IMG/VR virus record: IMGVR_UViG_3300042558_004148
Coordinates: 62,001-126,000 of that record
DNA length: 64,000 nucleotides
Strand: one strand, 5' to 3'
Shown here: positions 7,034 through 62,291 of the stretch, piece after piece
How positions within the stretch are numbered: the stretch's first letter is position 1
How the letters are laid out: each line of letters opens with the position of its first letter
Notes under the pieces: generated by a model
What the model saw: only the letters and a program-made list of their open reading frames with translations
What the model was told of the DNA's origin: nothing
Databases searched by the model: none
Position numbers and translations under genes: made by a program

Positions 7034-7624
7034 ATGGGACTTCTTCTAATAGATACTATAGCAAAAAATAAATCCATATTTAATCCATCTCCGGATCTAG
7101 ATACAAATAAATATGGTATTTGGGATTTAACTAAAGCGTCAATAACTTATGACAACGTAAATGTTAAGATAAGCGAGGTTTTCATAGTAGGCGATGATTA
7201 TCAGATGAGACCCGATTTAATTGCTGCAATCAAATTTGGTGATCAGGGTAAAATGGGATCACTGTTAAAATTGAATAATATAAGTAATCCATTTGCTATA
7301 GATCAAAATAGAGTTCTGATGCTACCAACAAGTAGCACCATAGATAGCACATTTAATGTTAAGAAAGCTAAAAATCAGGCAGCTGCATCTTCTAATACTA
7401 GTACTAATGCTAATCAGGTATTTAGAAATAATCAGGAACAAAAGAAATTCAAGGTTAGCGATGGCAGGAAAAAGTTTTTGGATGCAAAGATAAAAAATGC
7501 ACCAGAGATGGCTTTGCCTCCTAATGTTATGCAACCTAGTCAGAGAACAATAATTAAGAAGGACGGATTTATAATATTTGCTCCAGATTCCGGAGGTGGC
7601 GGATTAACCCAACCAGCAAATTAA
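7034..7624 (+). CDS. Baseplate wedge protein, T4 gp53-like (LysM-like)
   Basis: FIVGDDYQMRPDLIAAIKFG...LLKLNNISNPF matches the gp53/LysM-like RPD-x-I-A pattern. Confidence 0.7.
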   Translation: MGLLLIDTIAKNKSIFNPSPDLDTNKYGIWDLTKASITYDNVNVKISEVFIVGDDYQMRPDLIAAIKFGDQGKMGSLLKLNNISNPFAIDQNRVLMLPTSSTIDSTFNVKKAKNQAAASSNTSTNANQVFRNNQEQKKFKVSDGRKKFLDAKIKNAPEMALPPNVMQPSQRTIIKKDGFIIFAPDSGGGGLTQPAN

Positions 7625-7636
7625 TATTAACCGATT

Positions 7637-9190
7637 ATGAATATTGACGATATAAAGATAATTTCATTGGCTCTGAATAATATGAAGCTGGATGAGATGC
7701 TTAAAGTTGATAAATCAGGTGGATCGGAGGATGTACAGAAGCTTAGAGATACTGGTGAGACATCACAATATTCGATAGGTTTAGAATCTCCATATATCTT
7801 GATTAATGGATATCCGGTAAGTAAAGGACTTACTAAATTTCATCTTAGCTTGAATGGATTTCTCCCTGTAATAAGATTTTCTTTTGATGTAATAGAACCA
7901 CTATTTATATCTGTTAGTTATCCGAAGGATGGAGATATAGTGTCTGTTTATCTTAGATCCCCTGGGGATCTTTATAATCCAATGAGGATGGACTATAAAA
8001 TATTATCCGTAGATGGTGGAGTATCTAGTAAATATTCTTCGACTGGTTCTGATCCGGATGGTATTAATTTTAAATTTTCAATAGTTGCTGAATGTTACAT
8101 ACCTGGATTATATTCTCCTGTTATAAAATCGTTTAGTAACAAATCATCTTCTGATGTATTATTGGAGGTTTCACAGGAACTTAATTTGGGGTTTGCCACT
8201 AATGAAAATGCTACTGTTGATGAGATGACATGGATTTGTCCTAATTATTCATATTATGATTTCATATCCGATGTGTGTACAAGATCATATAAGGATGACG
8301 AAACCAGTTTTTTCGATTGTTGGGTTGATCAATATTATAATGTAAATTTTGTAAATCTTGGTACACAGTTTGCATTCCAGGATGATCCTAAGCAGGATGT
8401 AATGTTTATTCCTGGCTATACATCTGATGGGATTAAGCCAGATGCAAATATACCTGGTTCTGCCTCAGCGGCTCCTACTGTAACCCCATTTGTTTTAACT
8501 AACATGATGGGAGCAGGTATAACACCATTTTTCATAAATGGTTATACTCTAACCTCGAAATCAGGAAACGTTTCTAATTATTCGGGTTATGTTAATACCA
8601 TTGGATTTTATGATGAGAATACTACCGTGGAGACTCCGCCTGAAAAATACATAAAGTATGATATGGAATCACAAACTCCGGAGAATATAGAAACCGGTAT
8701 GATTTTACAAAAGGGTAGAGCAAGGGATAATGAATACAAGAATGAAACCAGAAGAGAATGGCTAGGTCCAATTAATATTAATGTTGATCCAACATATGGT
8801 GGTGTTCATAAGAATTACTATCACACTAAAATGCAGAATATTATAAATATTTTGGATGTAAATAAGCTAACGCTTGAAATAGAGATGAGCTCATATTTTG
8901 CTGGTGTCATAAAAGGACAAGTCGTTCCGGTTGCGATATATGCATTTGATGGAGGTCCAAGACAACAAAATACAGGTAATCTGCCAAATAAGGAGTCAAA
9001 TAAAACTATGTCACCAACATTAGACCTATTTCTATCTGGAAATTATGTAGTTCTTGGGGTTGAAATATATTGGTCTCCCAGCGGAGGTCTTAGACAAAAG
9101 CTAAATCTAAGCAGAAGAGCATGGACCGCTAACTCATCTGGAGCACTACCTAAAGCTTTCCCGATATCAATACAAAGTGGACAATTCTAA
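7637..9190 (+). CDS. Baseplate hub protein, T4 gp27-like
   Basis: 517 aa; sits between the gp53-like and gp5-like genes; segment SFSNKSSSDVLLEVSQELNLGF...WICPNYSYYDFISDV is typical of hub proteins. Confidence 0.6.
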   Translation: MNIDDIKIISLALNNMKLDEMLKVDKSGGSEDVQKLRDTGETSQYSIGLESPYILINGYPVSKGLTKFHLSLNGFLPVIRFSFDVIEPLFISVSYPKDGDIVSVYLRSPGDLYNPMRMDYKILSVDGGVSSKYSSTGSDPDGINFKFSIVAECYIPGLYSPVIKSFSNKSSSDVLLEVSQELNLGFATNENATVDEMTWICPNYSYYDFISDVCTRSYKDDETSFFDCWVDQYYNVNFVNLGTQFAFQDDPKQDVMFIPGYTSDGIKPDANIPGSASAAPTVTPFVLTNMMGAGITPFFINGYTLTSKSGNVSNYSGYVNTIGFYDENTTVETPPEKYIKYDMESQTPENIETGMILQKGRARDNEYKNETRREWLGPININVDPTYGGVHKNYYHTKMQNIINILDVNKLTLEIEMSSYFAGVIKGQVVPVAIYAFDGGPRQQNTGNLPNKESNKTMSPTLDLFLSGNYVVLGVEIYWSPSGGLRQKLNLSRRAWTANSSGALPKAFPISIQSGQF

Positions 9191-16685: not shown

Positions 16686-17462
16686 ATGACACAAGAGGAA
16701 TTAGTACAGGAGATACAGGATGCATTATCATTTAGTTGTGCATTACCCTATAATTTGAATGCTGCAGAAACTGAAAGAATTATAAAAAGAGCTAAAGCTT
16801 GGTTTTATGATAATTATCAATATGCTGTGGAGGATAGAGTTTTTGTTCTTGCTAATTCTCTATTTCAGCACCCTGAATTTAAAAAAACCAGACAGATAAA
16901 ATTACCACAGCCGATCATATCGGTATATGAGGTTAGAGAATTGGGAGGATCTGGGATTTCTGGTAATCCTGATAGAGATTTTAGCGATTCAAAGCTTCTT
17001 GGTTCTGAACTATTACTTTCCCCTTTTGTCGGGGATAATCTTGTTTATAGAACGGTGATGTATTCATATTTTGATTTAGCCCAGGCCTATCTATTAAATA
17101 CGTACGCTTTTAAGTTTAATAAGAATACAAAATTTCTAACCATAATGGGTAGGGATCCAAATAGATCAGGTAAAGGTCAAACCGCACAGGGATTTGGAGT
17201 AGGCGGAATAGATGTATCAGTTAGAGCATATGTTGCAATCCCGGATGAATATCTTTTTGATGACGAACTTTTCGTTAGATACTGTATAGCTAAATGTAAA
17301 ATTGCATTAGCTAATATGCTATCAGTTTTCAATTATAACCTGCCTGGTGGGATACAAGTTAACACATCGGACATAAGATCTACCGGTGAAGCTGAGCTTC
17401 AGGAGGTCATGGATATGATCAATGGTGAGAACACTCCTTCGTATTTCCTTCAATGGAATTAA
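16686..17462 (+). CDS. Neck protein, T4 gp13-like
   Basis: C-terminal FVRYCIAKCKIALANMLSVFNYNLPGGIQVN...EAELQEV parallels the gp13 LPGG motif. Confidence 0.75.
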   Translation: MTQEELVQEIQDALSFSCALPYNLNAAETERIIKRAKAWFYDNYQYAVEDRVFVLANSLFQHPEFKKTRQIKLPQPIISVYEVRELGGSGISGNPDRDFSDSKLLGSELLLSPFVGDNLVYRTVMYSYFDLAQAYLLNTYAFKFNKNTKFLTIMGRDPNRSGKGQTAQGFGVGGIDVSVRAYVAIPDEYLFDDELFVRYCIAKCKIALANMLSVFNYNLPGGIQVNTSDIRSTGEAELQEVMDMINGENTPSYFLQWN

Positions 17463-17494: not shown

Positions 17495-17866
17495 ATGAGA
17501 GAGATTTACAATAGAGATCCGCTTGATCCCAACTACAATCCTTATCAAATAGAGGTCACAGATCCAATAGAGATTTGTATAGGCCAACTTAAAATGATGC
17601 TACTTACTAATAAGGGCGAAGTTTTAGGTGATCCTAAATTTGGATTAAACCTTGAAGATCTTATATTTAATCTGGAACTTTCGGAATCTAGTATTAGGAA
17701 GGAATTAGATCTTTTCCTTAAGGTCTATGTTCCATTATTTTCAGTGCTTGGCGGTAGCTATGATCTTAGATTCTATGTTGGTACATTAAGGGATATAGCA
17801 ACACTAGACTTTAAATTACCTCAGGATGGAAAATTAAGCCCATTGGTTACATTAAGATTAACATAA
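17495..17866 (+). CDS. Baseplate wedge protein, gp25-like
   Basis: LLTNKGEVLGDPKFGLNLEDLIF gp25 signature. Confidence 0.85.
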   Translation: MREIYNRDPLDPNYNPYQIEVTDPIEICIGQLKMMLLTNKGEVLGDPKFGLNLEDLIFNLELSESSIRKELDLFLKVYVPLFSVLGGSYDLRFYVGTLRDIATLDFKLPQDGKLSPLVTLRLT

Positions 17867-17874
17867 TAATAGAT

Positions 17875-19599
17875 ATGAACATTTTTAAGAAAAATAACAT
17901 TTTAATAAACGGTCTTCTTGGTGATACGTTTAATTTTTTGCAGGCAACATATAATCAGACAGCAAACGTATTTACTGTTGCTTCAGCTTGGGGACAGATA
18001 TTATTTGTGCTACAAAATCTATCGCAGATGATCCTATATTTTATAGAGGATTCCATAACTGAATTAAACATAGACCAAGCAACTAGGGATTATTCAGTTA
18101 GAAGCTTAGCCAGAATAGCTGGATATGACTCTGGTAGAGCTAGTGCTGCTCAGGGTGAAGTTTCTCTTAAATGGAATACAAGAGAAGGTGGAGTAGGTGG
18201 AGGAGCAGTTATAATAAAAAACAATACACAGATTAGATGTCAGGAAAATGGAAAAACGTATTCTCTTAGGTTTAGTAGTCCTGAAGTAACTATACCTCTT
18301 ACCAGAGGAAATAATCTTAGAGTAAAGCTAGTACAGGGAACTTTTGAAACTGCACTTTTAACTGGGACCGGACAATCACTACAAAGCTATAATTTACCTT
18401 CAACATCAGGAGCTTTCTTGGATCAGTTTTATGTTGATGTTTATGTTAATGAGGAAAAATGGAGAAGATATGATTCGTTATATGACATTCCACTCAACGG
18501 GAAGGGATATCTAGTTAGAACAGGTATACAAGAAGGGCTTGATGTTTATTTTGGTAACTCTAATTTCGGTATGGCTCCACCGAGAGGATCCAGAATAAGA
18601 GTCGAATACCTTAAAACAAATGGAATAAGTGGTAATGCTAATTCAACTAAGGATAATCAGTTAACGTATAGGTTTTCTAATCAGGGTACAGATCTATTCG
18701 GAGCATCAGTTGATCTTAATCTCTATATAGATGTTAATAATGAAATAGATCCAGCATTTGGTAATAATCCTGAATCTCTTAATTTAATAAGACTAGTTGC
18801 ACCTAAAACTTCAAGATCTTTTGTTTTTGCAAATCCTGATAACTACGAGGTATTTTTAAATAAATTAGGAATATTTTCTCAGATACAGGCATTTTCAACA
18901 TTTGATGATGATTACCTTGACGACGATAACGTGGTTTACATATATTTAGTCCCTGACGTTACATTAAATATATCATCTAATGAGGATTATTTTAGTGTTC
19001 CTGTTTCTGACTTCTTTCTAAGTAATGCACAAAAGGCAAGAGTACTTAATCTTATAGAGGATTCTGGTTCTATGATAGCAACAACTGTTGTTAAAATTGT
19101 ACAACCAGTAATAACTAAATTTGTTGGAAATGCTATATTAAGTATATTTGAAGGCTCAGATCCGGAGACAATAAGACAGGCAGTGAGAAAGAAAATTTCA
19201 GATTATATGTTAAATCTGAAAAGAAGAGATAAAATACCAAAATCTGACATAATAGCATTAATAGAATCTGTACCTGGCGTTGATTCGGTTTCTTTCTACT
19301 TTATTGGGCAGGCTAATGAACAGAATCAAATAAACATCCAGGATCTGGATAATGTCTCGCAGGCACAACTGGACGAGGTTATTGGGATGGATCAATTTGG
19401 TGATATAATTATAGGCAGAAATCAATTGATTCTTTTGAGAGGTGGTTGGACAGATAGAAACGGAACATCGTACACAGAGGATTTTGTTGACGGAAAACCA
19501 GGTCCACTCAATGTAACAATAGCATCCATAGTTCCTAAATCTTTTAGAATGGATTTAAACACCTCTATGAAGAGCCAAATAATTAATCAGGGAAGCTAA
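17875..19599 (+). CDS. Baseplate wedge protein, gp6 / baseplate J-like
   Basis: Follows gp25; SLARIAGY-x-S-x-RASAAQG and IRLVAPK motifs; 574 aa. Confidence 0.8.
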   Translation: MNIFKKNNILINGLLGDTFNFLQATYNQTANVFTVASAWGQILFVLQNLSQMILYFIEDSITELNIDQATRDYSVRSLARIAGYDSGRASAAQGEVSLKWNTREGGVGGGAVIIKNNTQIRCQENGKTYSLRFSSPEVTIPLTRGNNLRVKLVQGTFETALLTGTGQSLQSYNLPSTSGAFLDQFYVDVYVNEEKWRRYDSLYDIPLNGKGYLVRTGIQEGLDVYFGNSNFGMAPPRGSRIRVEYLKTNGISGNANSTKDNQLTYRFSNQGTDLFGASVDLNLYIDVNNEIDPAFGNNPESLNLIRLVAPKTSRSFVFANPDNYEVFLNKLGIFSQIQAFSTFDDDYLDDDNVVYIYLVPDVTLNISSNEDYFSVPVSDFFLSNAQKARVLNLIEDSGSMIATTVVKIVQPVITKFVGNAILSIFEGSDPETIRQAVRKKISDYMLNLKRRDKIPKSDIIALIESVPGVDSVSFYFIGQANEQNQINIQDLDNVSQAQLDEVIGMDQFGDIIIGRNQLILLRGGWTDRNGTSYTEDFVDGKPGPLNVTIASIVPKSFRMDLNTSMKSQIINQGS

Positions 19600-20151: not shown

Positions 20152-23100
20152 ATGGCAGATATAAGACTTAAGTTTTTCAATAAGGAGGGTAATCCATTAA
20201 ATTTCGATTATATTGGACCAACCGGAGCTAATCCTTTAGATTCCAAATTTACATACCGTACATCCATATCGGGTGCTAGTAATCCTGGTGATCTTGATAT
20301 CACAGAATTTCCAACATATTATAATTTCTTATTCAATGCTGAGGATCTTAATGCATTTGATATGACCTCATGGTATACTGAAGCTGTTTATTGCTTAGAT
20401 AGAGGTACCGAAATATATCTTGAAGGATCTGTTGCTGGTCAGAATGACTTCAGAGGAAAAATATCAGCTGTTAATCTGTTAGGTAACCAATTAACGATAA
20501 CTATACCTAGTGACTATTATTCTGGACAAAGTATAATCAGTCCAGATAATCAGATATACTTTACCACACCTTATAAAAATAGACCCGGTGGATATTTTAA
20601 GGGAAATATTTATTTTGATCCGGTATCTGCTAATCTATACGAGAACGAGCAAATATTTGTTGTACAGGAATTTTATAACGTAACTACATCACAAATTACA
20701 TATGGACTTCCTCATACCGGCGCAACAGGAGCTACTGCTTCACCACAATGGAGAAGTAGATGGTACAATGATAATTATGGCGAAACTGACGTTTCGGAAA
20801 TAATATTCACTTATTCAATATCTGATCAATTGGATGGTGGTGATGGTGAGCCATTAATAGTTAGCTACCCTAACATGATTTTTGATGTTGATGTTGATCC
20901 TAACGATTTCTATTCTAATGGATACGTCAATACAACAACTTCATCCATTGATTCCAGTGCACTCCCAATAAATGTTGCCTTAAATGGACCAGAGGGTGCG
21001 GAAAATATTTATGAGAGAAAACTTATAATTGATGATATATCAACTGGAACACCAGAGAAAATATTGGAGGTTGATTACTATGGACAAATAATAGGTGAGG
21101 ACGAGAGATTTAAAGTGCTTTTAGCAAATCTGGGGAGATCTTTTTATAATAGTGATTCAGTTATACTTAGAGATCATGATCCTGCAGAACCTTTACCTAA
21201 TTACTTAGAGATAAACGAGAAGAGAAAAGAGCTTATGGTAGCTGGTGAGGAAATATTTCCTTATATTGGTAGTTATAAGGGTCTTATTAATGCTCTTAAG
21301 TTTTTTGGTTATCAGGATCTTAGAATAAAAGAATACTGGTTAAATCTTAAATATAATGGACTAAGAGTAGAATCGCCTATTCAGCAGAATAAGAATTTTT
21401 TAAATGCTATTAATAAACAGCAATCGCAGGGATATAATATGTCATATCAGATTGGTGATATATTGGACAACCCTAATTCTGGTAAATATAAGCTTACTCA
21501 AACCTACGGACCTAATAAAAATGGAGAATATGTTCTGGATGTTACATCGGAGGATACATTAGTACCAAGTAGAACATACAAAAAAACGTCACTATTTGGA
21601 CTTTATTATGATCTTAATAAAGTAACCGGTGAGGAAGACGAATTTAATTTACCGATAGTAGAGGACGCTTTTAAATTCACACAAGAGGAAGTACTTATTA
21701 AAATATTTGCTCTGAAGGAAAGATTGAAGAGGGATTATCTACCATTAAACGCCAGAATTATAGATATAACTGGTGAGGGTATTTATTTTGGTGTATATAA
21801 TACCAAATCCTGGACTGATATAATGGGAAGATCCGATTTTGATTCAGGCTTCGAGTTTGATTTCTATCCTAATCCGGATTTCGGTTTTTTAGAAGATCTA
21901 AGAAACTTTTCCACACGACCATTAGCTGGTGCTATACAAAGTCCTAGTTCATATAATAACAATTATTCTTCAACTGTTCAGTTTCTAGGTGGTACTGGAA
22001 GTGCCATTTATTTTAGTGGAAATCTACCGAATGGATCTACTGGACCTAATCCTATATTAAACCTATACATAGGTCAAACATACGAATTTAGCGTTTCCGA
22101 TACTTCCACCTATGGTTATGATCTTATAATTACAACCGATCCGAATTTAACACAGATAGATCCACTCGGAATAATTAATAATGGTGCAACCGGAGGTAAT
22201 TCAATTACATGGTACGTAGAACCTAGCCAAACTTCACCAGTATATTATTATTCTTCGGTAAATCCTTCATTATTGCTGGGTACTATTAATATACTACCCC
22301 CTATATTATCTGATTTAGGAAACATAGTGAATCCGCTAGATTCACAACAAATTTATAATAGCCAACAGAATCAATCGATGTTAAGTGCTATAGATAATTT
22401 CTATAAGCTTAAGCAGGAGGGGAAAATAATAGAATTGGGTGACGATAAATACGATCCTGTTGCATACATAGATCCAAATACTGGACAGCAGTACGACGTT
22501 CCTATTGGAATGCCAGTAATACTTGAACTATTTCCTGATATTTGGACATGGAACGAACTTAATACTAGCTGGGATTCCATAATGATACCTGCATATCGGG
22601 TAGGCGATAGAGTTGAGGTTCCATCTGTCCCATCATTCGGTACAGTTGTTGGAGTTAGTTACTCGACGGGCCAATATAATGTCCTTCTAGATCCACCTTA
22701 CAACATAACGACACAGTTTGGTGAGATGGAACTATTTGCAACAACCCAGGTATTTTTATTATTAACTTGGAGTAATATAGATTTTTCGAATGCGATGGAG
22801 ATAGAGTGGATAGTCGATAAAACCACCACTCAGTCAGGATCGCCTTATAATTTCAATTTTAGAGGTCCTATAGCGGACTTTTATAAAATGGCACACTTCT
22901 TACCATACAGCGGAGATTATAAGATTACGTGCAATGTATATGATGCCTTTAATGCTAAAAGCACTGTCATTAAGAATTCTATAATCAAGGTTCAACCAAA
23001 AACCATAGATATCGATTCTTGGACTAGATACAGAGAGGTTGAAAATTATATATGGGATAATGTTGATCGAGGATGGGACTCATATAAATCAATATGGGAA

Positions 23101-24912
23101 TATCCTGCAGAGGGAGATAGTATAGAGGTTCTAGAAAAAACAATACCTTCTGAGATTCTGAAATTTGCTACGTATGGGAATAAAGCCGAAGAGGGTCAGA
23201 GTTTATATGTTAAAACTAATCTAGATCCTGTCGGAGCAACCGGTGAGATATTATTATCTCAGAATGTTGTAGCGATAGATGAGATATATTCACTTCAGAT
23301 ATTTACTGGTCAATACGGATCAGCCACGGTATCTACCATAACACCTCATGGACTAAATGATGGTGATGAATTAACAATAATAGGAAGTATACCTGAAATA
23401 GATGGTAGATGGACAGCAAATATAGTTTCCCCTACTGTATTTACTATACCTTCCGTAATTTCAAATTCATGGAACGGTGTTGTTCTCGAGACAACCCCGG
23501 TAAATAGATATGTTATAGATCCAACTATATACACGACACAAAAAATTACTGGAGCTGGTTTAATAAAGGTCTATGTAAATAATAGAGAAATTGGAAGTGC
23601 TGATGCAGGTGACACATTATATCACACTGCAAATGCAATAACTTCTTCGATAAACTCACTAAGAACATACCCGGACTATTTTGCATCTTGTCTGAATCCT
23701 AGTACGGATCCTGTCTCTATTATAATATATGCTCCTGATGAATTAGGAGCCGATCAGAATGGTGTTCCGCTATCTGCTACTGTAACGGGAACATTATCAC
23801 TAAGTTCCATATCTGGAACTCTGGAGAATGGAGTAAGTCCTTCCGAAACATATGTTTATTGGTCTGAAAATTCAGAAATCTACCCCAATGATAATCTAAG
23901 ATTTTGGGGAACTAAAAATCTGGACTGGCAAATATTTAATGAGACTAGCTGGAATGATGGATATGCACATAGCTGGTATGATTTCGAATTTAATAACGAT
24001 TGGTTAGGTGGATATGAATTACATACAATATTACCCGGTGACCACGTCAAAGTAAGTACTGGTAATTCAACATACCCGTTCCCAGTTGGTGTTACATTAA
24101 CCAGTCCTGGAAGTTCGATGACTGTACAAGAAGTTGCTGATCAATTAAATAGTTCTGGCGAAACGCATATAACTAATTTTTACTATAGACCTATACCTAG
24201 CGATACCGGATCATTAAGCACAATAACCGGTCCTATTAATCTGGATCTTACTAATGCGTCGGTCCCTGTTAGTACATACCCAGCTCCGCCTTCACTAATA
24301 GGAGGTAGTAATGTATTGATACCTAATTTCGGTTACACTGGAGGTACTCCTATAACAACAACGTCTACGACAACGACGACAACAATAGCTCCTACCACTA
24401 CGACAACCACGACTACGACAACCACGACGTCGACAACAACAACGACCACAGCGGCACCTACAACGACTACAACAACGACCATAGATCCTTGTTTACTTGC
24501 TGGTAATGCTGTAATGATTTATCCGACTACGACAACCACGACGTCGACAACAACAACAACAACGGTACCCATAGGACAAGTTATTATGAATAATCTAGAT
24601 AATACCGGAACTATTGAGGATGTGCAGGTGAATTCGAATTCTATTCTGGTAAGTCCAGGAACATTCCCGGTATTACCAAACACAACCGGTGTAGGCAGTT
24701 ACGGATACGGGATACCAGGACTTTCCCAGATAGAAGTAAGTGTTGGTGCGGTGACAATGTATACGGCCGTAAATCTATCATTAAGTACTGGATATACAGA
24801 TTGTCTTTTACTTGATCCGTTTGCAGGGTTCGTAGTATTCTCGATGGTAGATTTATCAACAGCACCAACTATAACAATAACACTAGAACAGCAAGGAACC
24901 GCGTGTGCATAA
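20152..24912 (+). CDS. Large baseplate wedge protein, gp7-like, with PKD-like segments and a C-terminal mucin-like Thr tract
   Basis: IGSYKGLINALKFFGY motif typical of gp7/P2 gpI-like wedge proteins; position after gp6; poly-Thr near the C-terminus. Confidence 0.65.
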   Translation: MADIRLKFFNKEGNPLNFDYIGPTGANPLDSKFTYRTSISGASNPGDLDITEFPTYYNFLFNAEDLNAFDMTSWYTEAVYCLDRGTEIYLEGSVAGQNDFRGKISAVNLLGNQLTITIPSDYYSGQSIISPDNQIYFTTPYKNRPGGYFKGNIYFDPVSANLYENEQIFVVQEFYNVTTSQITYGLPHTGATGATASPQWRSRWYNDNYGETDVSEIIFTYSISDQLDGGDGEPLIVSYPNMIFDVDVDPNDFYSNGYVNTTTSSIDSSALPINVALNGPEGAENIYERKLIIDDISTGTPEKILEVDYYGQIIGEDERFKVLLANLGRSFYNSDSVILRDHDPAEPLPNYLEINEKRKELMVAGEEIFPYIGSYKGLINALKFFGYQDLRIKEYWLNLKYNGLRVESPIQQNKNFLNAINKQQSQGYNMSYQIGDILDNPNSGKYKLTQTYGPNKNGEYVLDVTSEDTLVPSRTYKKTSLFGLYYDLNKVTGEEDEFNLPIVEDAFKFTQEEVLIKIFALKERLKRDYLPLNARIIDITGEGIYFGVYNTKSWTDIMGRSDFDSGFEFDFYPNPDFGFLEDLRNFSTRPLAGAIQSPSSYNNNYSSTVQFLGGTGSAIYFSGNLPNGSTGPNPILNLYIGQTYEFSVSDTSTYGYDLIITTDPNLTQIDPLGIINNGATGGNSITWYVEPSQTSPVYYYSSVNPSLLLGTINILPPILSDLGNIVNPLDSQQIYNSQQNQSMLSAIDNFYKLKQEGKIIELGDDKYDPVAYIDPNTGQQYDVPIGMPVILELFPDIWTWNELNTSWDSIMIPAYRVGDRVEVPSVPSFGTVVGVSYSTGQYNVLLDPPYNITTQFGEMELFATTQVFLLLTWSNIDFSNAMEIEWIVDKTTTQSGSPYNFNFRGPIADFYKMAHFLPYSGDYKITCNVYDAFNAKSTVIKNSIIKVQPKTIDIDSWTRYREVENYIWDNVDRGWDSYKSIWEYPAEGDSIEVLEKTIPSEILKFATYGNKAEEGQSLYVKTNLDPVGATGEILLSQNVVAIDEIYSLQIFTGQYGSATVSTITPHGLNDGDELTIIGSIPEIDGRWTANIVSPTVFTIPSVISNSWNGVVLETTPVNRYVIDPTIYTTQKITGAGLIKVYVNNREIGSADAGDTLYHTANAITSSINSLRTYPDYFASCLNPSTDPVSIIIYAPDELGADQNGVPLSATVTGTLSLSSISGTLENGVSPSETYVYWSENSEIYPNDNLRFWGTKNLDWQIFNETSWNDGYAHSWYDFEFNNDWLGGYELHTILPGDHVKVSTGNSTYPFPVGVTLTSPGSSMTVQEVADQLNSSGETHITNFYYRPIPSDTGSLSTITGPINLDLTNASVPVSTYPAPPSLIGGSNVLIPNFGYTGGTPITTTSTTTTTTIAPTTTTTTTTTTTTSTTTTTTAAPTTTTTTTIDPCLLAGNAVMIYPTTTTTTSTTTTTTVPIGQVIMNNLDNTGTIEDVQVNSNSILVSPGTFPVLPNTTGVGSYGYGIPGLSQIEVSVGAVTMYTAVNLSLSTGYTDCLLLDPFAGFVVFSMVDLSTAPTITITLEQQGTACA
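24355..24564 (+). repeat. Poly-Thr (ACN)n coding tract, 46 Thr in 70 codons, with an internal exact 34-bp duplication
   Basis: Translated directly; cgactacgacaaccacgacgtcgacaacaacaac occurs at 24410-24443 and 24524-24557. Confidence 0.95.
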
Positions 24913-24966
24913 TAATGTTGCTAATGATCCAATGATATTAAAAAATATAAAATATAAAATATAAAA

Positions 24967-26166
24967 ATGGCTACAGCTACTATAACTTTAACCACTGCGG
25001 GAACTGGAACAGGACCATTTGATCTGTATTCCGATTTTGATGGATATGTTACCCCATTTGAAACTGGTGTTGATAAATCATTATTGGTTTCTGGATATAC
25101 AACATCATTGGTTTATAATGGAACAACTATAATTAGGGTTCAGTCCACAAGTATACAGTGTACAAATTATATAGATTTGTCAGTATCAGGTATAACTACC
25201 ACAACCACGACATCAACATCAACAACAACAACGACAACAACTCCTCCGGTGCTATGTGTATGTTATACAGTGGTTTATACTGGACCCCCTCCACCTCCAC
25301 AATTTTATACTGGTACAACGGATTACTCATATATTGATTGTTCGGGACTTACCGTGAATACAATAGTATCAGAAGGTTACCCCGTTGATGTTTGTGCTCA
25401 AGAAAACAGTATTATAATAACCGGTGGTGACGAACTCGCTGGCTGGGACGTGTCACTGTTTAATTGCTGTACTAGTAATCCAATGGATCTTAGTTATGGT
25501 GTAAATATTAGCACAGTTTGTAACAATCCGCAGCTTGTGTCTGTTTGTGCTGATACAAATGATATATGTACCGCAACAGTATTGACAGATTCTGATTTTA
25601 ACCAGAATTGTCTTACTACACCTGCATCTGCAGGATATTATGGAGATGGAACAAACTATAGATATTGGGATGGATCAACATTTACTACCGGATGTACTCT
25701 TTGTACTGGATGTTTAGTTGCTGACACATTAATAACATTATCTAACGGGACAACTAAATTGATACAGGATATACAGGTTGGCGATGTATTGAAATCCCTT
25801 GATGTGGCAGGAATGCCTCTGGCACCGGATCAATGGTATCATTGGAGCAGTGATATATTGGATTACATAAATTCCACATCAACTGTGATCGGTGTATCAA
25901 TCCATGAATTTGATTCCGTAATAAACATTAATAACGGTAAATTAATTGCAACCTACACCCATAACCACGTAGTTAAGCAAAATGACGTATGGTACATTAG
26001 AACAACATTCGAATTGAATGTTGGTGATGTGTTATTGGATATAGATAACAACGAATTTGAAATTACCTCATTGGTTGTTGTAAATGCACCAATAACTGTA
26101 TATGATATTGATGTGAATAACAGTAATTTATATTTTGCAAATGATACATTAACTCATAACAAATAA
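24967..26166 (+). CDS. Thr-rich, Cys-rich putative virion protein with a C-terminal Hint domain
   Basis: Thr tract at 25195-25242, PPPPP and a Cys-rich middle; Hint from CLVADTLI (25711) to VYDIDV...FANDTLTHNK-stop. Confidence 0.85.
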   Translation: MATATITLTTAGTGTGPFDLYSDFDGYVTPFETGVDKSLLVSGYTTSLVYNGTTIIRVQSTSIQCTNYIDLSVSGITTTTTTSTSTTTTTTTPPVLCVCYTVVYTGPPPPPQFYTGTTDYSYIDCSGLTVNTIVSEGYPVDVCAQENSIIITGGDELAGWDVSLFNCCTSNPMDLSYGVNISTVCNNPQLVSVCADTNDICTATVLTDSDFNQNCLTTPASAGYYGDGTNYRYWDGSTFTTGCTLCTGCLVADTLITLSNGTTKLIQDIQVGDVLKSLDVAGMPLAPDQWYHWSSDILDYINSTSTVIGVSIHEFDSVININNGKLIATYTHNHVVKQNDVWYIRTTFELNVGDVLLDIDNNEFEITSLVVVNAPITVYDIDVNNSNLYFANDTLTHNK

Positions 26167-26223
26167 TAAATTACATGATGGAATTTATTACTATTAGGAG
26201 AGTATAATTATAAAAATTTGGGT

Positions 26224-27192
26224 ATGATAAACAAAAAAATAACCTTTATTTGCGCACAGCCGGATGTGCCTTATTTTCATTGGCAAGTGGAGGTACTAAT
26301 CCATAATTTTATGAAAAGTGGAATAAATCCCAATTGGATAGAAATTCTATTTGCCTATGATGAGTCAATATCACCAGAGGGATCTGAGTTGGCTAAAAAA
26401 TACCCATACGTTAGATTTTTTTTCTACAAGAAAACTCCGGTTGAAAACTACGGATATATTCCAATTTTAAGACCGGATATATTGGAACAGCATTTTCTTA
26501 AATATCCTGGTCTTTCAGATGATAATATATTCTATCATGATTCTGATATCATCTTTAGAGAACTTCCTGACTTTAATTCATTGATTAATGATGATGTCTG
26601 GTATCTAAGTGACACGGTTTCCTATATAGGATCAGATTATATTAAAAGTAAATCCGAGCAAATTTTGGAAGATATGTGTGACATAGCTGGAGTTTCCAGG
26701 GATCTTGTTGAAGCTAACAATCCAAATTCAGGAGGTGCGCAATATCTTATGAAAAATATAGATCACCTATTCTGGAGGGACGTTAAATACGTTGCTCTCA
26801 ATCTGTATAAATATATGCTTGATGCTGAGGTGGAGGAGAGGAAAACTCTATCTGAAGAGCAGTTATCTTCTTACAACCCAATACAGAAATGGTGCGCAGA
26901 TATGTGGGCGGTATTATGGTGTGGACTTAAAAGGGGAAGTCAGGTTAGATTATCTGATGAACTTGGATTTAGCTGGGGATCTAGCTGGGGGCAAACAGAA
27001 TGGAATAAACATAAAATATTACACAATGCCGGAGTTACAGATAATGGGAACGGGAAGATGTTTTATAAAGGAGATTATATAAATAATTCTCCTTGGGAAG
27101 CTGATCTATCCACAATAAGTCCCGATGCCAATTCTTATAATTATGTACAGGCCATATTATATGCTAAAGAAATGAGATCTAAACTGCATTGA
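26224..27192 (+). CDS. GT-A glycosyltransferase resembling plant peptidyl-serine alpha-galactosyltransferase / Hyp O-arabinosyltransferase (GT96/GT95-like)
   Basis: YFHWQVEVLIHNFMKSG, HDSDIIFR (DxD), GGAQYLM and KWCADMWAV align in order with SERGT1 motifs recalled as YFDWQTVGLMHSFLKSG, LDADMIIR, VGGLLAM and GWISEMYGY. An alternative TTG start lies at 26218. Confidence 0.75.
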   Translation: MINKKITFICAQPDVPYFHWQVEVLIHNFMKSGINPNWIEILFAYDESISPEGSELAKKYPYVRFFFYKKTPVENYGYIPILRPDILEQHFLKYPGLSDDNIFYHDSDIIFRELPDFNSLINDDVWYLSDTVSYIGSDYIKSKSEQILEDMCDIAGVSRDLVEANNPNSGGAQYLMKNIDHLFWRDVKYVALNLYKYMLDAEVEERKTLSEEQLSSYNPIQKWCADMWAVLWCGLKRGSQVRLSDELGFSWGSSWGQTEWNKHKILHNAGVTDNGNGKMFYKGDYINNSPWEADLSTISPDANSYNYVQAILYAKEMRSKLH

Positions 27193-33083: not shown

Positions 33084-33833
33084 TTATCCGTTATTTTCGT
33101 CCCATTCATCGAACGTTTCCTCTATAATTTTTACTATAGGATCTCTAACAATATCATTTACTCCAAAGCTCATTGTTCCTATATCGGGTTTCCCGTCAAA
33201 TAACTTAACCACGAGATCAAGAGACGAAAGCTTGGGGTTTTTCATATCAATTTGTTTAGTGTCTCCCGTAATGATCATTTTAGTATCCGTACCGATACGA
33301 GTCATCGTGGACCTCATATTCTTCTTGGTTATGTTTTGAGCTTCGTCTACGATGATTATAGCATTGTCTATGGACCTCCCTCTAATAAAAGCCAATGGTA
33401 GAACCTCTATTAATTTTTGATCTAGCATAATGTTAGTTAAACCCTCACCGATTAACTTATGGAAGTTGTCCAGGAATGATATTGTAAAGGGTAACATTTT
33501 TTCTTTTAAATCTCCTTTAAGAAATCCAACTTCCTCTCCTTCTAATACCGTTACACTTTTTACTAAAATAATTTTTTTAAATCTCTGCTCGGTCTTTAAT
33601 AATTTTAATGCTTGAGCACATGCTAAATAAGTCTTTCCCGTTCCTGCTGGTCCAGCTGCTATGGTTATTTTATTGTCGCTTATCAGGCTTATTAGTTTTT
33701 TCTGACTTTCGTTTTTATGCTTGTAATCCAATCTTAGTTTTTGTAGATCAAATTTTAATGGATTTGCCACCTGTGTCGGCGGAAACACGTCGTAAAATTC
33801 TTCATCCGAAATTCTCTTCTTTCTGTTAGCCAT
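33084..33833 (-). CDS. phoH: PhoH-like ATPase
   Basis: GPAGTGKTYLA Walker A, EEVGFLKG, RGRSIDNAIIIVDEAQN and ITGDTKQID. Confidence 0.95.
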   Translation of the reverse strand: MANRKKRISDEEFYDVFPPTQVANPLKFDLQKLRLDYKHKNESQKKLISLISDNKITIAAGPAGTGKTYLACAQALKLLKTEQRFKKIILVKSVTVLEGEEVGFLKGDLKEKMLPFTISFLDNFHKLIGEGLTNIMLDQKLIEVLPLAFIRGRSIDNAIIIVDEAQNITKKNMRSTMTRIGTDTKMIITGDTKQIDMKNPKLSSLDLVVKLFDGKPDIGTMSFGVNDIVRDPIVKIIEETFDEWDENNG

Positions 33834-57346: not shown

Positions 57347-58324
57347 ATGAGTAATTTAGACATTTTCAATTTGGACGCAGAGGCGTTCGTAACGAAAGCA
57401 AACGCAGTAGAATCAAAAGATTCGGAATTTTATAAGCCATATCCTGAAAACGGTAAGGATGGAGTTTATAAATCTTTAATTAGATTTGTGCCTAATCCAG
57501 CAGATCCAGCGGTATCTAAGGTTCACAAATATTATGTGTATTTGAATGATCCAGTATCAGGAGACGGATTTTCAGCCGATTGTCCATCAACTGTTGGTAA
57601 GAAATCAATTCTTAAAGACATGTTCTGGAAGTTAAAGAATTCACATTCTGCTGCAGACCAGGAATTAGCTAAGAGCTTCTCAAGAAAAGAGGATTTCTAT
57701 TCGTTAGTTCAAATCGTTCAGGATAAAAACAAACCTGAATTGGAAGGAAAGATCATGATCTTCAAATTTGGTAAAAAATTGAATGATATGATCGAGGCAC
57801 AACTTAAACCAGAATACGGTGATTCTTGTAATCCTTTCGATCTTTTCGAAGGTAGAGAATTCGCATTAAGTGTTAGAAAAGTTGGTGAATGGAATAACTA
57901 CGATCTTTGCTCATTCGTGGGTGAAAAAAATGCAATTAAGATCGATGGGGTTTCTATGAAAAAATCTCAGGAGGATATGGCAAAAATTCTCGATTATTTA
58001 AACGATGGACCTAAAAACTTATCAAGTTTTGATTATAAGGACTGGGATGATGATATGACTGAGAAAGTTATGAGTGTAATCAGAAACACAGTTCCTGATC
58101 AAAGATTGGTTAACGAGATCGTTGGTGGTGTTGCTTCTGCTCCTGCAAGAACTGCGCCAGCTCAATCAGCTCCAGCTCCAGTAATGGAACAAGAGTCTAC
58201 ATCTGGTGATTTATACGCTGAGGTATCTCAAACTAAAGTTGCTGGACATGTTGAAAGAACTGAATCTTCCGCTCCTTCAAGCAATAGTAGTTCTTCATTA
58301 GAAGATCTTTACGCAGACCTTTAA
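57347..58324 (+). CDS. Single-stranded DNA-binding protein, T4 gp32-like
   Basis: LIRFVP, DCPST, KIMIFKFGKKL...FDLFEGREFAL and acidic tail SSLEDLYADL. Confidence 0.88.
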   Translation: MSNLDIFNLDAEAFVTKANAVESKDSEFYKPYPENGKDGVYKSLIRFVPNPADPAVSKVHKYYVYLNDPVSGDGFSADCPSTVGKKSILKDMFWKLKNSHSAADQELAKSFSRKEDFYSLVQIVQDKNKPELEGKIMIFKFGKKLNDMIEAQLKPEYGDSCNPFDLFEGREFALSVRKVGEWNNYDLCSFVGEKNAIKIDGVSMKKSQEDMAKILDYLNDGPKNLSSFDYKDWDDDMTEKVMSVIRNTVPDQRLVNEIVGGVASAPARTAPAQSAPAPVMEQESTSGDLYAEVSQTKVAGHVERTESSAPSSNSSSSLEDLYADL

Positions 58325-60147: not shown

Positions 60148-61704
60148 ATGTTAAAATTTCAAGTTTCAGAAGACCAACAATGGATGATATTAATTGAATC
60201 CCTGGACGAGGTCGAGAAAAAACAACTAGATATATCACTAACGCAAAAGATCCATAACTTCTATTTCCATCCACTGGTTAAGAAGAAGATATGGGACGGA
60301 AACATATGCTTTATAGAGAAGAAAGGAAATATGTGGAAGGTTCCTATTGGATTATGGAGAGAGGTTCTTGAGATAGGTGAGAAGTATAAAATCGAGATGC
60401 AAATAAAAGGCATAGAGGAGATTATTATAAGGGACATAACACTAGAGGATTTTACTACATGGGTGAATGAATTTTTTGAGGATGGTATAGGTGGTGATCC
60501 CGATAAGAAACCCAGAGATTATCAGATAGAAACGGCTTGGAAGATTATAAGATACAGATATTCTATTTCTGAGGTAGCCACTTCGTCAGGTAAGACATTA
60601 ATATCATTTATGATATTTGCTTATTTGAAATCCAAGGGACTCATTAAAAAATATATGATGATAGTTCCCAATAATAATCTTGTTTTTCAAGGGAGCGACG
60701 ATTTCGAGGATTATGGAATAGAAAAATTAGGAGTTAAGATTCAGCAAATCGGTGGAGGAAGTAAGCTCAGGGAAGGCTGTGATGTCATTATGGGTACTTT
60801 CCAATCACTGGTGAAGAAGGAACCAGAATTTTTTGCTGATGTTGATGTTGTTTTTGTTGATGAAGCACACCATACGAATTCCATGTCCATAAAGAAGATA
60901 GTTGCAAATTGCATGCACTCTAGATGGAGATTTGGTCTAACCGGAACATTGACAAAGAAAGGAACCGCTGATTATATGACAATACAGCAATTTTTAGGTC
61001 CACTTGTTGTTGAAATCCCGCCAAGCTATCTTTTTGATAATAACTATGCAACACCTGTTTCGATAAAGGTTGTTATTATGGATTGGCTTGAAGATAGCTA
61101 TAAACAAAAACTTGCTGACATAAAACTTAACAATTCGAATAAATCATCGGATAAAAAAATAGAAGGAAATGAGTTTTATAACATAGAAAGAAAGTTAGTT
61201 ATAGAAAGCAGAAAAAGACTTAATTACATAGTTGATTTCATTAGTAAAAGTTCTAAGAATTCACTAGTACTATTTCAATCAGTTAAGGATGAATACGGAA
61301 AGCAGATATGGAATTTACTAAGAGAGAAAAACTCGGACAAGGAGGTTTTCTACGTCGAAGGTGGAACAAATGAAGCTCTAAGAGAGGAATATAAAACAAG
61401 AATGAGCTCGGGTGAAAATAAGGTCCTTATAGCAACTTATGGAACATTCTCTACCGGTATTTCGATCAATAATCTGCATAATATATTTCTTGTTGAATCA
61501 TATAAGAGTGAAGTTCTAATTAAGCAGAGTTTAGGTAGGGGTATGCGTAAAATGGAAGGAAAGGACAAAGTAAATATTATAGATTTCGTTGACGATTTTA
61601 GTACCAAAAATTATTTGAATTATTTAATGAAACATAGTCTGGAGAGAATGGAGATATACAAGAAGGAATCTTTCGATTATAAAATATACAAAGTTAAACT
61701 TTAG
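60148..61704 (+). CDS. uvsW: SF2 DNA helicase, UvsW-like
   Basis: PRDYQ, ATSSGKT, DEAHH, GLTGT, ATYGTFSTGISI and QSLGRGMR. Confidence 0.92.
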   Translation: MLKFQVSEDQQWMILIESLDEVEKKQLDISLTQKIHNFYFHPLVKKKIWDGNICFIEKKGNMWKVPIGLWREVLEIGEKYKIEMQIKGIEEIIIRDITLEDFTTWVNEFFEDGIGGDPDKKPRDYQIETAWKIIRYRYSISEVATSSGKTLISFMIFAYLKSKGLIKKYMMIVPNNNLVFQGSDDFEDYGIEKLGVKIQQIGGGSKLREGCDVIMGTFQSLVKKEPEFFADVDVVFVDEAHHTNSMSIKKIVANCMHSRWRFGLTGTLTKKGTADYMTIQQFLGPLVVEIPPSYLFDNNYATPVSIKVVIMDWLEDSYKQKLADIKLNNSNKSSDKKIEGNEFYNIERKLVIESRKRLNYIVDFISKSSKNSLVLFQSVKDEYGKQIWNLLREKNSDKEVFYVEGGTNEALREEYKTRMSSGENKVLIATYGTFSTGISINNLHNIFLVESYKSEVLIKQSLGRGMRKMEGKDKVNIIDFVDDFSTKNYLNYLMKHSLERMEIYKKESFDYKIYKVKL

Positions 61705-61739: not shown

Positions 61740-62291
61740 ATGATAATGAAATCATTTACTGAATTTACTAACAATGTATCCGAAGCTAGCTCCGAGGGCA
61801 GCACAGGGAAGACTACATTTAGTAGATGGCTTAGAGATATGAACACGAGAGTTGGTGATGATATGAAGGATTCTAATTACTATTCTAGTTATTATGATTC
61901 TGATGACAAATATCAAGCTGCAAGAAGAGCAACCAACCTAATTCCTAATGTATTTAGATTAATTACCGGAGCTGGAGCTGCTGTTGCAGATTTCTTAACA
62001 CCTAAAGGATCAAGTAAAGAGGAGAAAAGTTCAAATAAGTTTACTAAGGACGAACTAAAAGCTAAAAAGACTGAAATCCTTAATAAATGGGAAAGGGATA
62101 ATATTGGTGATAAAAAAGTTACCGATGCTGATGCTGAAAAGTTCTATAAATCTGGAGTGATCAAGGGTAAAAAATACTTCGGGAAGGATTTTGATCCAGC
62201 AAACCCTAAGAATAAGGAAGAGGAAATGTACGCCGATTATATGAATGGTATAATGGAGAGGTATTATAAAAAGACAAGCAATGCACAATAA
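61740..62291 (+). CDS. Hypothetical protein, possible head-internal protein
   Basis: N-terminus MKSFTEFTNNVSE is capsid-targeting-like; preceded by the late motif. Confidence 0.7.
   Translation: MIMKSFTEFTNNVSEASSEGSTGKTTFSRWLRDMNTRVGDDMKDSNYYSSYYDSDDKYQAARRATNLIPNVFRLITGAGAAVADFLTPKGSSKEEKSSNKFTKDELKAKKTEILNKWERDNIGDKKVTDADAEKFYKSGVIKGKKYFGKDFDPANPKNKEEEMYADYMNGIMERYYKKTSNAQ

Follow-up and report, generated by a model that had tools for sequence, protein, structure and literature searches.

Does a huge phage encode its own means of attaching sugars to its virion proteins? The question is raised by three consecutive co-directional genes in a 64,000-nucleotide window (the whole stretch of DNA analyzed here, positions 62,001 to 126,000 of IMG/VR record IMGVR_UViG_3300042558_004148). 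A first-pass annotation, made from the sequence alone, proposed that two structural proteins with threonine-rich tracts are followed by a plant-type peptidyl-Ser/Thr glycosyltransferase, and that together they build a mucin-like glycocalyx on the baseplate and fibres. The genes and tracts that it described are present, although two of the labels it gave them were not confirmed. Its interpretation is partly supported: the proposed pairing of substrate and enzyme gains strong support from comparative genomics, but the plant-type or eukaryote-type kinship does not.

The three ORFs lie on the + strand at 20152-24912 (1586 aa), 24967-26166 (399 aa), and 26218-27192 (324 aa from a TTG start). An ATG at 26224 gives an enzyme of 322 aa and agrees with the N-termini of homologues. 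Upstream is a gene for a gp13-like neck protein (16686-17462, +), whose orthologues carry PF26809 Phage_T4_gp13 and which has a PHROG head-tail adaptor match at E 2.7e-6. It is followed by a possible gp25-like baseplate wedge gene (17495-17866, +), with only sub-threshold matches (Pfam GPW_gp25, E 0.053; phrog_261, E 0.003) but a position before the gp6-like gene that fits. The gp6-like baseplate wedge subunit gene (17875-19599, +) matches phrog_219 at E 4.4e-33, and Baseplate_J_C is recorded weakly on its orthologues.

We predict that the 1586 aa protein is a baseplate- or fibre-associated structural protein and the first acceptor. It has a conserved body of about 1400 aa, a Thr-rich linker, and a variable C-terminal domain, and it matches only phrog_28177, a family of unknown function. 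Synteny is conserved in the relatives L003, L005, L007, and L009 (L numbers denote the viral loci compared here). The body is 58-92% identical across 7 relatives, whereas the segment after the tract is not conserved. The name gp7-like, given in the first-pass annotation, rests only on gene order after the gp25-like and gp6-like genes; neither the single sequence nor a 7-sequence profile returned a PDB hit, and an AF2 model of residues 1-1200 reached a pLDDT of 44.8, too poor for a fold search.

The tract at 24355-24564 (+; residues 1402-1471) contains exactly 46 Thr in 70 residues, as had been claimed, and starts just after a conserved GYTGG motif. A tract is present at the same place in all 10 relatives examined. 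It uses all four Thr codons (ACA 20, ACG 16, ACT 6, ACC 6), so it is not a simple DNA microsatellite. A conserved 15-residue Cys-containing island (24481-24525, +; I-D-P-C-L-L-A-G-N-A-V-M-I-Y-P) splits the tract in two; a similar island is present in L003, L005, L007, L012, L015, and L016 and absent in L009, L014, L019, and L032. The C-terminal domain of about 115 aa (24565-24909, +) differs in sequence between relatives whose protein bodies are 58-69% identical, and a role in receptor binding is inferred.

The 399 aa protein, the second proposed acceptor, is modular. A conserved N-terminal domain of about 75 aa is followed by a Thr/Ser linker (25195-25242, +; residues 77-92), a Pro/Cys-rich middle part with a PPPPP run and many Cys, and a C-terminal Hint domain. 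It contains 16 Thr in 30 residues. Among about 45 ORFs of at least 100 aa in the window, only this protein and the 1586 aa protein have such tracts; the next highest has 16 Thr per 70 residues. The N-terminal domain and Thr linker are shared with the gene at the same position in L003, L005, L007, L012, and L015, while the C-terminal part varies, and in L009 the gene is replaced by an unrelated 93 aa ORF. The Hint (bacterial intein-like, BIL) autoprocessing domain (25711-26163, +) begins with Cys in a C-L-V-A-D-T motif and ends in T-H-N followed by Lys and the stop codon. Pfam gives only weak, sub-threshold hits (PT-HINT, Hint, and Intein_splicing), but the last 170 aa match solved Hint/BIL domains (6tmm/6y75 at E 2.4e-7 and 2lwy at E 3.7e-4).

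The protein encoded at 26224-27192 (+) is named only as hypothetical in databases. It matches phrog_4417, a family of unknown function, at E 9.6e-66 over nearly the full profile (residues 9-316 against profile positions 2-291 of 293), and has no Pfam (E<=0.1) or NCBIfam hit. The AF2 model is confident (pLDDT 96.6, pTM 0.93) and a Foldseek search predicts a GT-A fold: there are 184 PDB matches at E<=0.001, and the best 50 listed are all GT-A glycosyltransferases, led by the retaining families GT24 (UGGT), GT8 (LgtC, glycogenin, GlyE, LARGE1, XXYLT1), GT6, and GT77. The GT8 and GT24 enzymes are the best neighbors (E 2.5e-8 to 1e-4, probability 1.0), and several of them (glycogenin, UGGT, GlyE, XXYLT1) act on proteins or protein-linked glycans. 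TM-scores are only 0.4-0.5 (0.63 for 6mw5 when normalized by target length), so donor, acceptor, and stereochemistry cannot be read from the fold. A library of viral models gave 153 matches at E<=0.001; after two family members, the hits are mostly annotated as glycosyltransferases, several as GT8. No transmembrane segment was predicted.

In an alignment of 51 homologues that are 34-91% identical, the DxD motif D108-S-D110 (26539-26547, +; numbered from the TTG start) is invariant. So is His269 (27022-27024, +), in an H-N-A-G motif followed by invariant F282 and K284; by analogy with GT8-type enzymes, this His may be the third metal ligand. The GT8 signature H-x-x-G-x-x-K-P-W is at best loosely echoed, as H-N-A-G, then about 9 residues, then F-x-K. 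No member of the 51 has a sequence-level match to any Pfam glycosyltransferase model, and no GT8 model appears among their hits at E<=10. Some family members are fused to GT2, GT6, GT32-type, GT25, and Glyco_transf_7C domains.

The first-pass annotation held it as established that the motif order matches GT96 (SERGT1) and GT95 (HPAT), plant enzymes (SGT1, a peptidyl-Ser alpha-galactosyltransferase, and a Hyp O-arabinosyltransferase) that transfer sugar directly onto hydroxy-amino acids in repetitive extensin- or mucin-like sequences. The proposed chemistry is similar, but we found no support for the kinship. The Pfam HPAT model (PF23452) gives no hit to the window protein and matches 1 of 51 members, at E 0.23, which is noise. 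No GT95 or GT96 structure appeared among the fold matches, and one study predicted that GT96 does not adopt a classical GT-A fold (PMC8476585). The family is found in Bacteroidota, Bacillota, and their phages, and no eukaryotic named protein appeared among the listed homologues.

Is the enzyme tied to Thr tracts beyond this locus? This co-occurrence had been named beforehand as a test. In 70 distinct IMG/VR loci, the same-strand gene immediately upstream carries a strong Thr/Ser tract in 52 (74%). Position -2 has 17%, position -3 has 10%, and all positions other than -1 together have 25 of 976 ORFs, about 2.6% (Fisher p = 5e-53, with locus counts not corrected for shared ancestry). Most of the negatives have weaker Thr runs, but a few phage loci (L041, L049, L050, L089, and L090) carry the enzyme with no Thr-tract neighbor. 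The upstream neighbors fall into 21 unrelated sequence clusters, of which 12-13 carry tracts. Within the window's own clade, tract and enzyme gene are both conserved at 56-91% enzyme identity.

Co-variation gives a second line of evidence. Among 27 members of one Enterococcus-phage tail-tube family, 13 end in a poly-Thr tail and all 13 have the enzyme gene directly downstream; the 14 without a tail have none within 3 kb, and the two states interleave across identity levels. The pairing is also seen in the cultured phages phiFL1A, VPE25, iLp84, Bacchae, phiCTP1, and Chryseobacterium phage MA9V-3. In prophages of Staphylococcus, Bacillus, Clostridium, Trichococcus, and Lacticaseibacillus, a protein of about 205 aa with a poly-Thr tail precedes the enzyme gene, and in the S. 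aureus locus Pfam confirms that this protein is a tail-tube protein.

These patterns bear on whether the enzyme is a true glycosyltransferase that acts instead on phage DNA, or on a host envelope glycan or lipid (for receptor masking or superinfection exclusion), and merely sits in the structural module. Phage glycosyltransferases are best known for DNA modification and serotype conversion (summarized in PMC12619734), and VPE25, which carries a homologue, has glycosylated DNA, although its authors attribute this to a different, T4 beta-glucosyltransferase-like gene. We consider this reading unlikely. Hitch-hiking does not predict that specifically the gene at position -1 carries a tract, nor the 13/13 versus 0/14 co-variation, and the family occurs in temperate siphophages and prophages between the tail-tube and chaperone genes.

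The association is asymmetric. Of 55 evaluable poly-Thr ORFs in viral contigs, only 6 are followed by this enzyme, so tracts do not require it. The other 49 leave room for a reading in which the tracts are unmodified flexible linkers and the GT-A-like protein is a non-catalytic assembly factor, a tract-binding chaperone, or functionally unrelated to its neighbors. This is the least likely of the alternatives: the invariant DxD and His, the very high conservation of the nucleotide-sugar-binding core, and the fusions to other catalytic glycosyltransferase domains argue for catalysis. Moreover, three of ten other genes following poly-Thr ORFs are GT2- or GT1-type transferases, which suggests that such tracts are generally glycosylation targets.

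It is also possible, but unlikely, that the enzyme acts on the tracts and transfers something other than a simple sugar from an NDP-sugar (a sugar-phosphate, a polyol-phosphate, or a nucleotidyl group), or builds a long polymer primed on Thr, as glycogenin primes glycogen. GT-A-like folds with DxD motifs support several nucleotide-activated transfer chemistries, glycogenin and polymerizing GT8/GT24-like enzymes are among the structural neighbors, and some homologues are fused to radical-SAM/SPASM or methyltransferase domains, which suggests more elaborate products. However, the best 50 structural neighbors listed from the PDB all use NDP-sugars, and the most common fusion partners are ordinary GT-A sugar transferases.

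We therefore predict, with fair confidence but without biochemical or mass-spectrometric evidence for any member of the family, that the gene encodes a soluble, cytoplasmic, metal-dependent GT-A glycosyltransferase of a previously unannotated family. During late infection it most likely uses a host nucleotide-sugar to O-glycosylate Thr (and Ser) residues of disordered poly-Thr tracts in newly made virion proteins, here the linker of about 70 residues in the 1586 aa protein and the short linker of the 399 aa protein. The result would be stiff, extended, protease-resistant, glycan-coated linkers carrying the variable distal domains. In this view, enzyme and substrate travel as a two-part cassette (poly-Thr tag plus transferase gene) in many unrelated phages, and in siphophages of Bacillota the tag is a C-terminal tail on the tail-tube or capsid protein. 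Our analysis establishes the genes, the tracts, the predicted fold, the conserved DxD and His, and the genomic association and co-variation; catalytic activity, Thr as the acceptor, the donor sugar, retaining stereochemistry, the presence of glycans on the virion, and the benefit to the phage are inferred. A mucin-like glycocalyx on baseplate and fibres is an overstatement, as the tracts in this phage are linkers of roughly 70 and 16 residues, and the benefits proposed in the first-pass annotation (protease resistance, adhesion, and so on) remain speculation.

The closest precedent is virion glycosylation in Che8-, Corndog-, and Myrna-type mycobacteriophages (Freeman et al. 2023, cited in PMC12619734). 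There, phage-encoded glycosyltransferases reportedly lie in or beside the structural genes, and glycans are reported on C-terminal extensions of the capsid and tail-tube subunits. The Bacillota phages analyzed here have poly-Thr C-terminal tails on exactly these two proteins, and the transferase gene is likewise adjacent to the structural gene whose low-complexity tail or linker is the proposed acceptor. The enzyme family is different, as no Mycobacterium phage is among the 77 phage records with a homologue in a tblastn search. In addition, the tag is a near-pure poly-Thr run, the hosts are Bacteroidota and Bacillota, and the targets proposed in the window phage are internal linkers of baseplate/fibre proteins rather than capsid or tube tails. 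Serine-rich-repeat adhesins of Gram-positive bacteria offer a second parallel: a long, low-complexity Ser/Thr-rich region of a surface-exposed protein is O-glycosylated in the cytoplasm by soluble enzymes encoded next to the substrate gene (GtfA/GtfB, followed by GT8 enzymes such as GlyE, itself among the fold matches). There, the initiating enzyme is a GT-B (GT4) pair, to which no homology was shown, and the substrates are exported adhesins rather than virion proteins.

Glycosylated phage particles have so far been documented essentially in mycobacteriophages, where the glycans change how antibodies see the virion, and a literature search found no paper on the present family. A wider reading, which we regard as slightly more likely than not, is that PHROG 4417 and its relatives (more than 3,400 clusters at 90% identity) are a new family of peptidyl-threonine O-glycosyltransferases that forms a mobile cassette with a portable poly-Thr glyco-tag. 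Phages of Bacillota and Bacteroidota, from Staphylococcus, Enterococcus, Listeria, and Lactobacillus prophages to genomes of 300-430 kb, would use it to glycosylate capsids, tail tubes, and fibres, and Bacteroidota cells would use the same family to glycosylate exported ribosomal peptides. Virion glycosylation would then be common rather than a peculiarity of mycobacteriophages, occurring in phages of lactic acid bacteria, enterococci, staphylococci, listeriae, clostridia, and Bacteroidota and in huge environmental phages. This would bear on phage stability and adsorption, on virion proteomics and cryo-EM maps (where tails would appear disordered or carry unexplained mass), and on immune recognition of therapeutic phages, and would give glycobiology a compact soluble enzyme with a short, genetically encodable poly-Thr tag.

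The chromosomal homologues in Bacteroidota have no poly-Thr neighbor. They are two-domain proteins encoded beside LanC-like, C39-peptidase ABC exporter, HlyD, and GT11 genes, in clusters that resemble peptide-maturation rather than polysaccharide clusters, which points to peptide acceptors and away from envelope glycans. This is the classic setting of peptide-modifying transferases such as those of glycocins and other glycosylated RiPPs (SunS/ThuS type), although those belong to GT2, the link here is by gene context only, and no precursor peptide was firmly identified. One of the homologues sits near a protein with a double-glycine leader.

The window is low in G+C (about 34%) and nearly all its genes lie on the + strand. 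The gene order around the three genes of interest is a gp13-like neck protein (16686-17462), a weak gp25-like protein (17495-17866), a clear gp6-like baseplate wedge subunit (17875-19599; phrog_219, E 4e-33), a 176-aa ORF, the three genes themselves, and then several large ORFs, one of them with weak tail-fibre matches. A gene for a PhoH-like ATPase lies on the minus strand (33084-33833) inside the otherwise co-directional fibre gene block, and this placement is conserved in all relatives examined. Further on, a gp32-like single-strand DNA-binding protein and a superfamily-2 helicase (57347-58324 and 60148-61704) follow the fibre genes, which supports a distant T4-like affiliation. Megablast of 20 kb of the window against 50,697 phage records found nothing, so there is no cultured close relative. 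Close relatives of the enzyme sit on metagenomic contigs of 94 to 430 kb with the same gene order. The source is therefore a very large, distantly T4-like myovirus. The nearest homologues of the enzyme in assembled genomes come from Bacteroidota bins, and the best cultured-phage hit is a Chryseobacterium phage. We infer that a Bacteroidota host is plausible.

The first-pass annotation described three ORFs, and all three exist as described. The first, a 1586-aa protein, has exactly 46 Thr in residues 1402-1471 (24355-24564). No other ORF in the window comes near this except the next gene, with 23 Thr in 70 residues and 16 in 30. We considered that the tract might be a DNA microsatellite artefact. 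This was rejected because all four Thr codons are mixed and the tract is conserved at the protein level in relatives; selection is acting on the protein, and this is not replication slippage of one triplet. The annotation had also labeled the large protein gp7-like. The label was not confirmed: phmmer against the PDB and a 7-sequence profile against the PDB gave no hit, and an AF2 model of residues 1-1200 from 11 sequences reached only pLDDT 44.8, too poor for a fold search. A sigma-70 promoter scan matched chance expectation. Terminator-like sites numbered 10 against 4.3 expected from shuffles, and the listed ones fall inside the ORFs rather than in the short gaps between the three genes.

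The second protein, of 399 aa, ends in a complete and genuine Hint (bacterial intein-like) domain that makes up its last 150 or so residues (25711-26163). The domain starts with Cys and ends in His-Asn, with only one Lys after it, which suggests self-cleavage or transfer of the N-terminal part. One possible role is autoproteolytic release or transfer of the N-terminal, Thr-linked part.

The third protein (26224-27192) belongs to PHROG 4417, of unknown function. Pfam and NCBIfam searches gave nothing and a sequence search against the PDB gave only a chance hit. A Pfam scan of 51 aligned homologues at E<=10 gave only scattered noise. Family assignment therefore had to come from the predicted structure. 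The alignment of these 51 homologues, at 34-91% identity, shows an invariant D108-x-D110, an invariant H269, and other invariant positions, and from it AlphaFold2 gives a very confident model (pLDDT 96.6). Foldseek places the model among GT-A glycosyltransferases. The best matches are the UGGT catalytic domain (GT24), WbbM, LARGE1, XXYLT1, LgtC, glycogenin and GlyE (GT8), alpha-1,3-galactosyltransferase and the blood-group transferases (GT6), and the Skp1 galactosyltransferase (GT77). E-values go down to 2.5e-8, but TM-scores are only about 0.4-0.5, a similarity too loose to name the donor or the stereochemistry. The viral structure library gives the same picture. The enzyme has no membrane segment. 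The observation that this gene encodes a GT-A enzyme is thus confirmed at the level of the predicted fold. The further claim that it matches the plant families GT95/GT96 is not confirmed: for GT95, the Pfam HPAT model hits one of 51 members, at E 0.23. The plant label should be dropped.

We asked in five ways whether the enzyme is functionally tied to the Thr tracts. Within the window's own clade, in relatives whose enzyme is 56-91% identical, the large protein always has a Thr/Ser tract at the same place, directly after a conserved GYTGG motif. The domain behind the tract changes between relatives. The small gene between the large protein and the enzyme usually keeps a conserved N-terminal domain plus a Thr linker and swaps its C-terminal part. 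The Hint domain occurs only in the window and its closest relative (locus L003), and other relatives carry unrelated C-terminal modules. In another relative (L017), the gene downstream of the enzyme (7413-8024) encodes a protein with a Gly/Ser-rich repeat of the S-S-G-T-S-G type, a different kind of low-complexity tract.

Across viral metagenomes, we took 80 IMG/VR loci holding a family member (40-90% identity), called ORFs, and used one fixed rule for a tract: at least 15 Ser/Thr, including at least 8 Thr, in 20 residues. The same-strand ORF directly upstream of the enzyme gene (position -1) has a tract in 52 of 70 distinct loci (74%). The value is 17% at position -2, 10% at position -3, and 0-2% at each downstream position; all positions other than -1 together have 25 of 976 ORFs with a tract. 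The odds ratio is 110 and Fisher p is 5e-53, from counts that are not phylogenetically corrected. A handful of phage loci have the enzyme without a tract neighbor, but most of the negatives still have runs such as six or seven Thr separated by x-A-P. After masking the tracts, the upstream neighbors fall into 21 unrelated sequence clusters, and 12-13 of these carry tracts. The signal is therefore not one inherited event. These neighbors are typically beads-on-a-string proteins, with small Cys-containing modules joined by Thr runs with x-A-P spacers.

A natural experiment is provided by the major tail protein of Enterococcus phage phiFL1A. We searched for relatives of the body of this protein, leaving its tail out of the query, and found 27 loci at 65-100% identity. 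Thirteen of these proteins end in a poly-Thr tail (14-18 Thr in the last 30 residues), and all thirteen have the enzyme gene abutting or overlapping the stop codon. The fourteen without a tail have no family member in the 3 kb downstream. The two states interleave at the 99-100%, 79-87%, and 65-68% identity levels. Tag and enzyme have therefore been gained or lost together more than once.

The pairing is also found in cultured phages and prophages. In phiFL1A, the tail protein ends in a poly-Thr tail and the enzyme gene lies between it and the tail chaperone genes. The tail protein of VPE25 ends in a Thr run. As VPE25 DNA is glycosylated, we considered that the enzyme may act in DNA glycosylation, but judged this unlikely; the authors of the VPE25 work attribute the DNA modification to a different, T4 beta-glucosyltransferase-like gene. 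In Lactobacillus phage iLp84, the capsid protein and the tail protein both end in Thr runs, and a 125-aa poly-Thr protein lies next to the enzyme. In Lactobacillus phage Bacchae, three small poly-Thr proteins surround the enzyme gene. The small proteins that flank the enzyme gene in these two phages (iLp84, locus L092, 4450-5997; Bacchae, locus L093, 5057-7161) are 64-168 aa long and made largely of Thr runs with V-K-P or A-A-P spacers; they may be glycosylated decoration proteins. In Clostridium phage phiCTP1, gp18, directly upstream, ends in Thr runs, and in Chryseobacterium phage MA9V-3 two poly-Thr proteins lie upstream. In bacterial genomes, prophages of Staphylococcus aureus, Bacillus, Gracilibacillus, Alkalibacillus, Trichococcus, Clostridium, and Lacticaseibacillus show a protein of about 205 aa with a poly-Thr C-terminus directly before the enzyme gene. 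For the S. aureus locus, Pfam confirms that this protein is a tail-tube protein and that the gene three positions downstream of the enzyme gene is the tape measure.

The reciprocal test asked whether every poly-Thr ORF has this enzyme. Among viral contigs with at least 12 consecutive ACN codons, only 6 of 55 evaluable poly-Thr ORFs (about 11%) are followed by it. The enzyme therefore predicts a tract, but a tract does not predict the enzyme. Of ten other following genes that were scanned, three are GT2- or GT1-type glycosyltransferases (on IMG/VR contigs L135, 11779-12666; L166, 4243-5067; and L161, 5738-6817). Other transferase families seem to have been recruited to the same kind of substrate, possibly independently.

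Many homologues are two-domain proteins, with Glyco_transf_7C, GT6, GT2, a GT32-type DXD domain, or GT25 as the partner domain. Rarer partners are a radical-SAM/SPASM domain and a methyltransferase (metagenomic homologues P0132 and P0122), which hint at more elaborate modifications. The chromosomal homologues in Chitinophaga, Pedobacter, Mucilaginibacter, and Sphingobacterium are of the two-domain type and have no poly-Thr neighbor. Two of these loci were examined, in Chitinophaga filiformis (L215, 5509-14190) and Mucilaginibacter lappiensis (L233, 6518-10804). In both, the gene, which combines this domain with Glyco_transf_7C, lies with a LanC-like gene. In C. filiformis it also lies with a GT11 fucosyltransferase, a C39-peptidase ABC exporter, and a HlyD-family gene, and in M. 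lappiensis there is an adjacent 170-aa protein with a typical double-glycine leader. That is the setting of exported, post-translationally modified peptides, and it looks like an undescribed glycosylated-peptide (RiPP or bacteriocin-like) gene cluster. It independently suggests that the family's acceptors are polypeptides.

The interpretation offered by the first-pass annotation is thus supported in part: the tie between the enzyme and the Thr tracts is borne out by gene context, whereas the plant kinship is not supported. What the analysis shows is a soluble protein of predicted GT-A fold with conserved DxD and His, and its tight, repeated, and co-varying linkage to poly-Thr segments of virion proteins. 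The remainder, including catalysis itself, is inferred from sequence, predicted structure, and genomic context. We propose that the enzyme acts in the cytoplasm during late infection, takes a host NDP-sugar, binds it through the DxD-metal site, and transfers the sugar to Thr hydroxyls in the disordered tracts. The product would probably be alpha-linked, because the fold neighbors are retaining enzymes. We looked for other glycosyltransferase or sugar-nucleotide genes in 26 of the window's ORFs and found none. The glycan may therefore be a monosaccharide per site or a short homopolymer, unless other enzymes lie elsewhere in the genome. By analogy with mucins and with the glycosylated Pro/Thr linkers of secreted carbohydrate-active enzymes, glycosylation would stiffen and extend the linker and protect it from proteases, and would then hold the variable distal domains away from the baseplate. 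In siphophages, in this view, the tag is on every tail-tube or capsid subunit, and the result would be a dense coat, as in mycobacteriophages.

Phage virion glycosylation has a precedent in mycobacteriophages (cited in PMC12619734). The arrangement found here resembles it in logic, but it uses a different enzyme family and a distinct poly-Thr tag. The family is unnamed in every source examined; its members are labeled “hypothetical protein”, “bacteriophage protein”, or “prophage pi2 protein 34”, with no Pfam domain recorded. Full-text literature searches found no description of this family or of poly-Thr-tagged phage proteins being glycosylated.

Within the Thr tract of the large protein, a conserved 15-residue Cys-containing island (24481-24525) interrupts the Thr run. 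It is kept in six relatives and absent from four, and could be a docking or recognition element. Thr codon usage in the tract is skewed towards ACG, which makes up 33% of Thr codons there, against about 10% in the window's long + strand ORFs.
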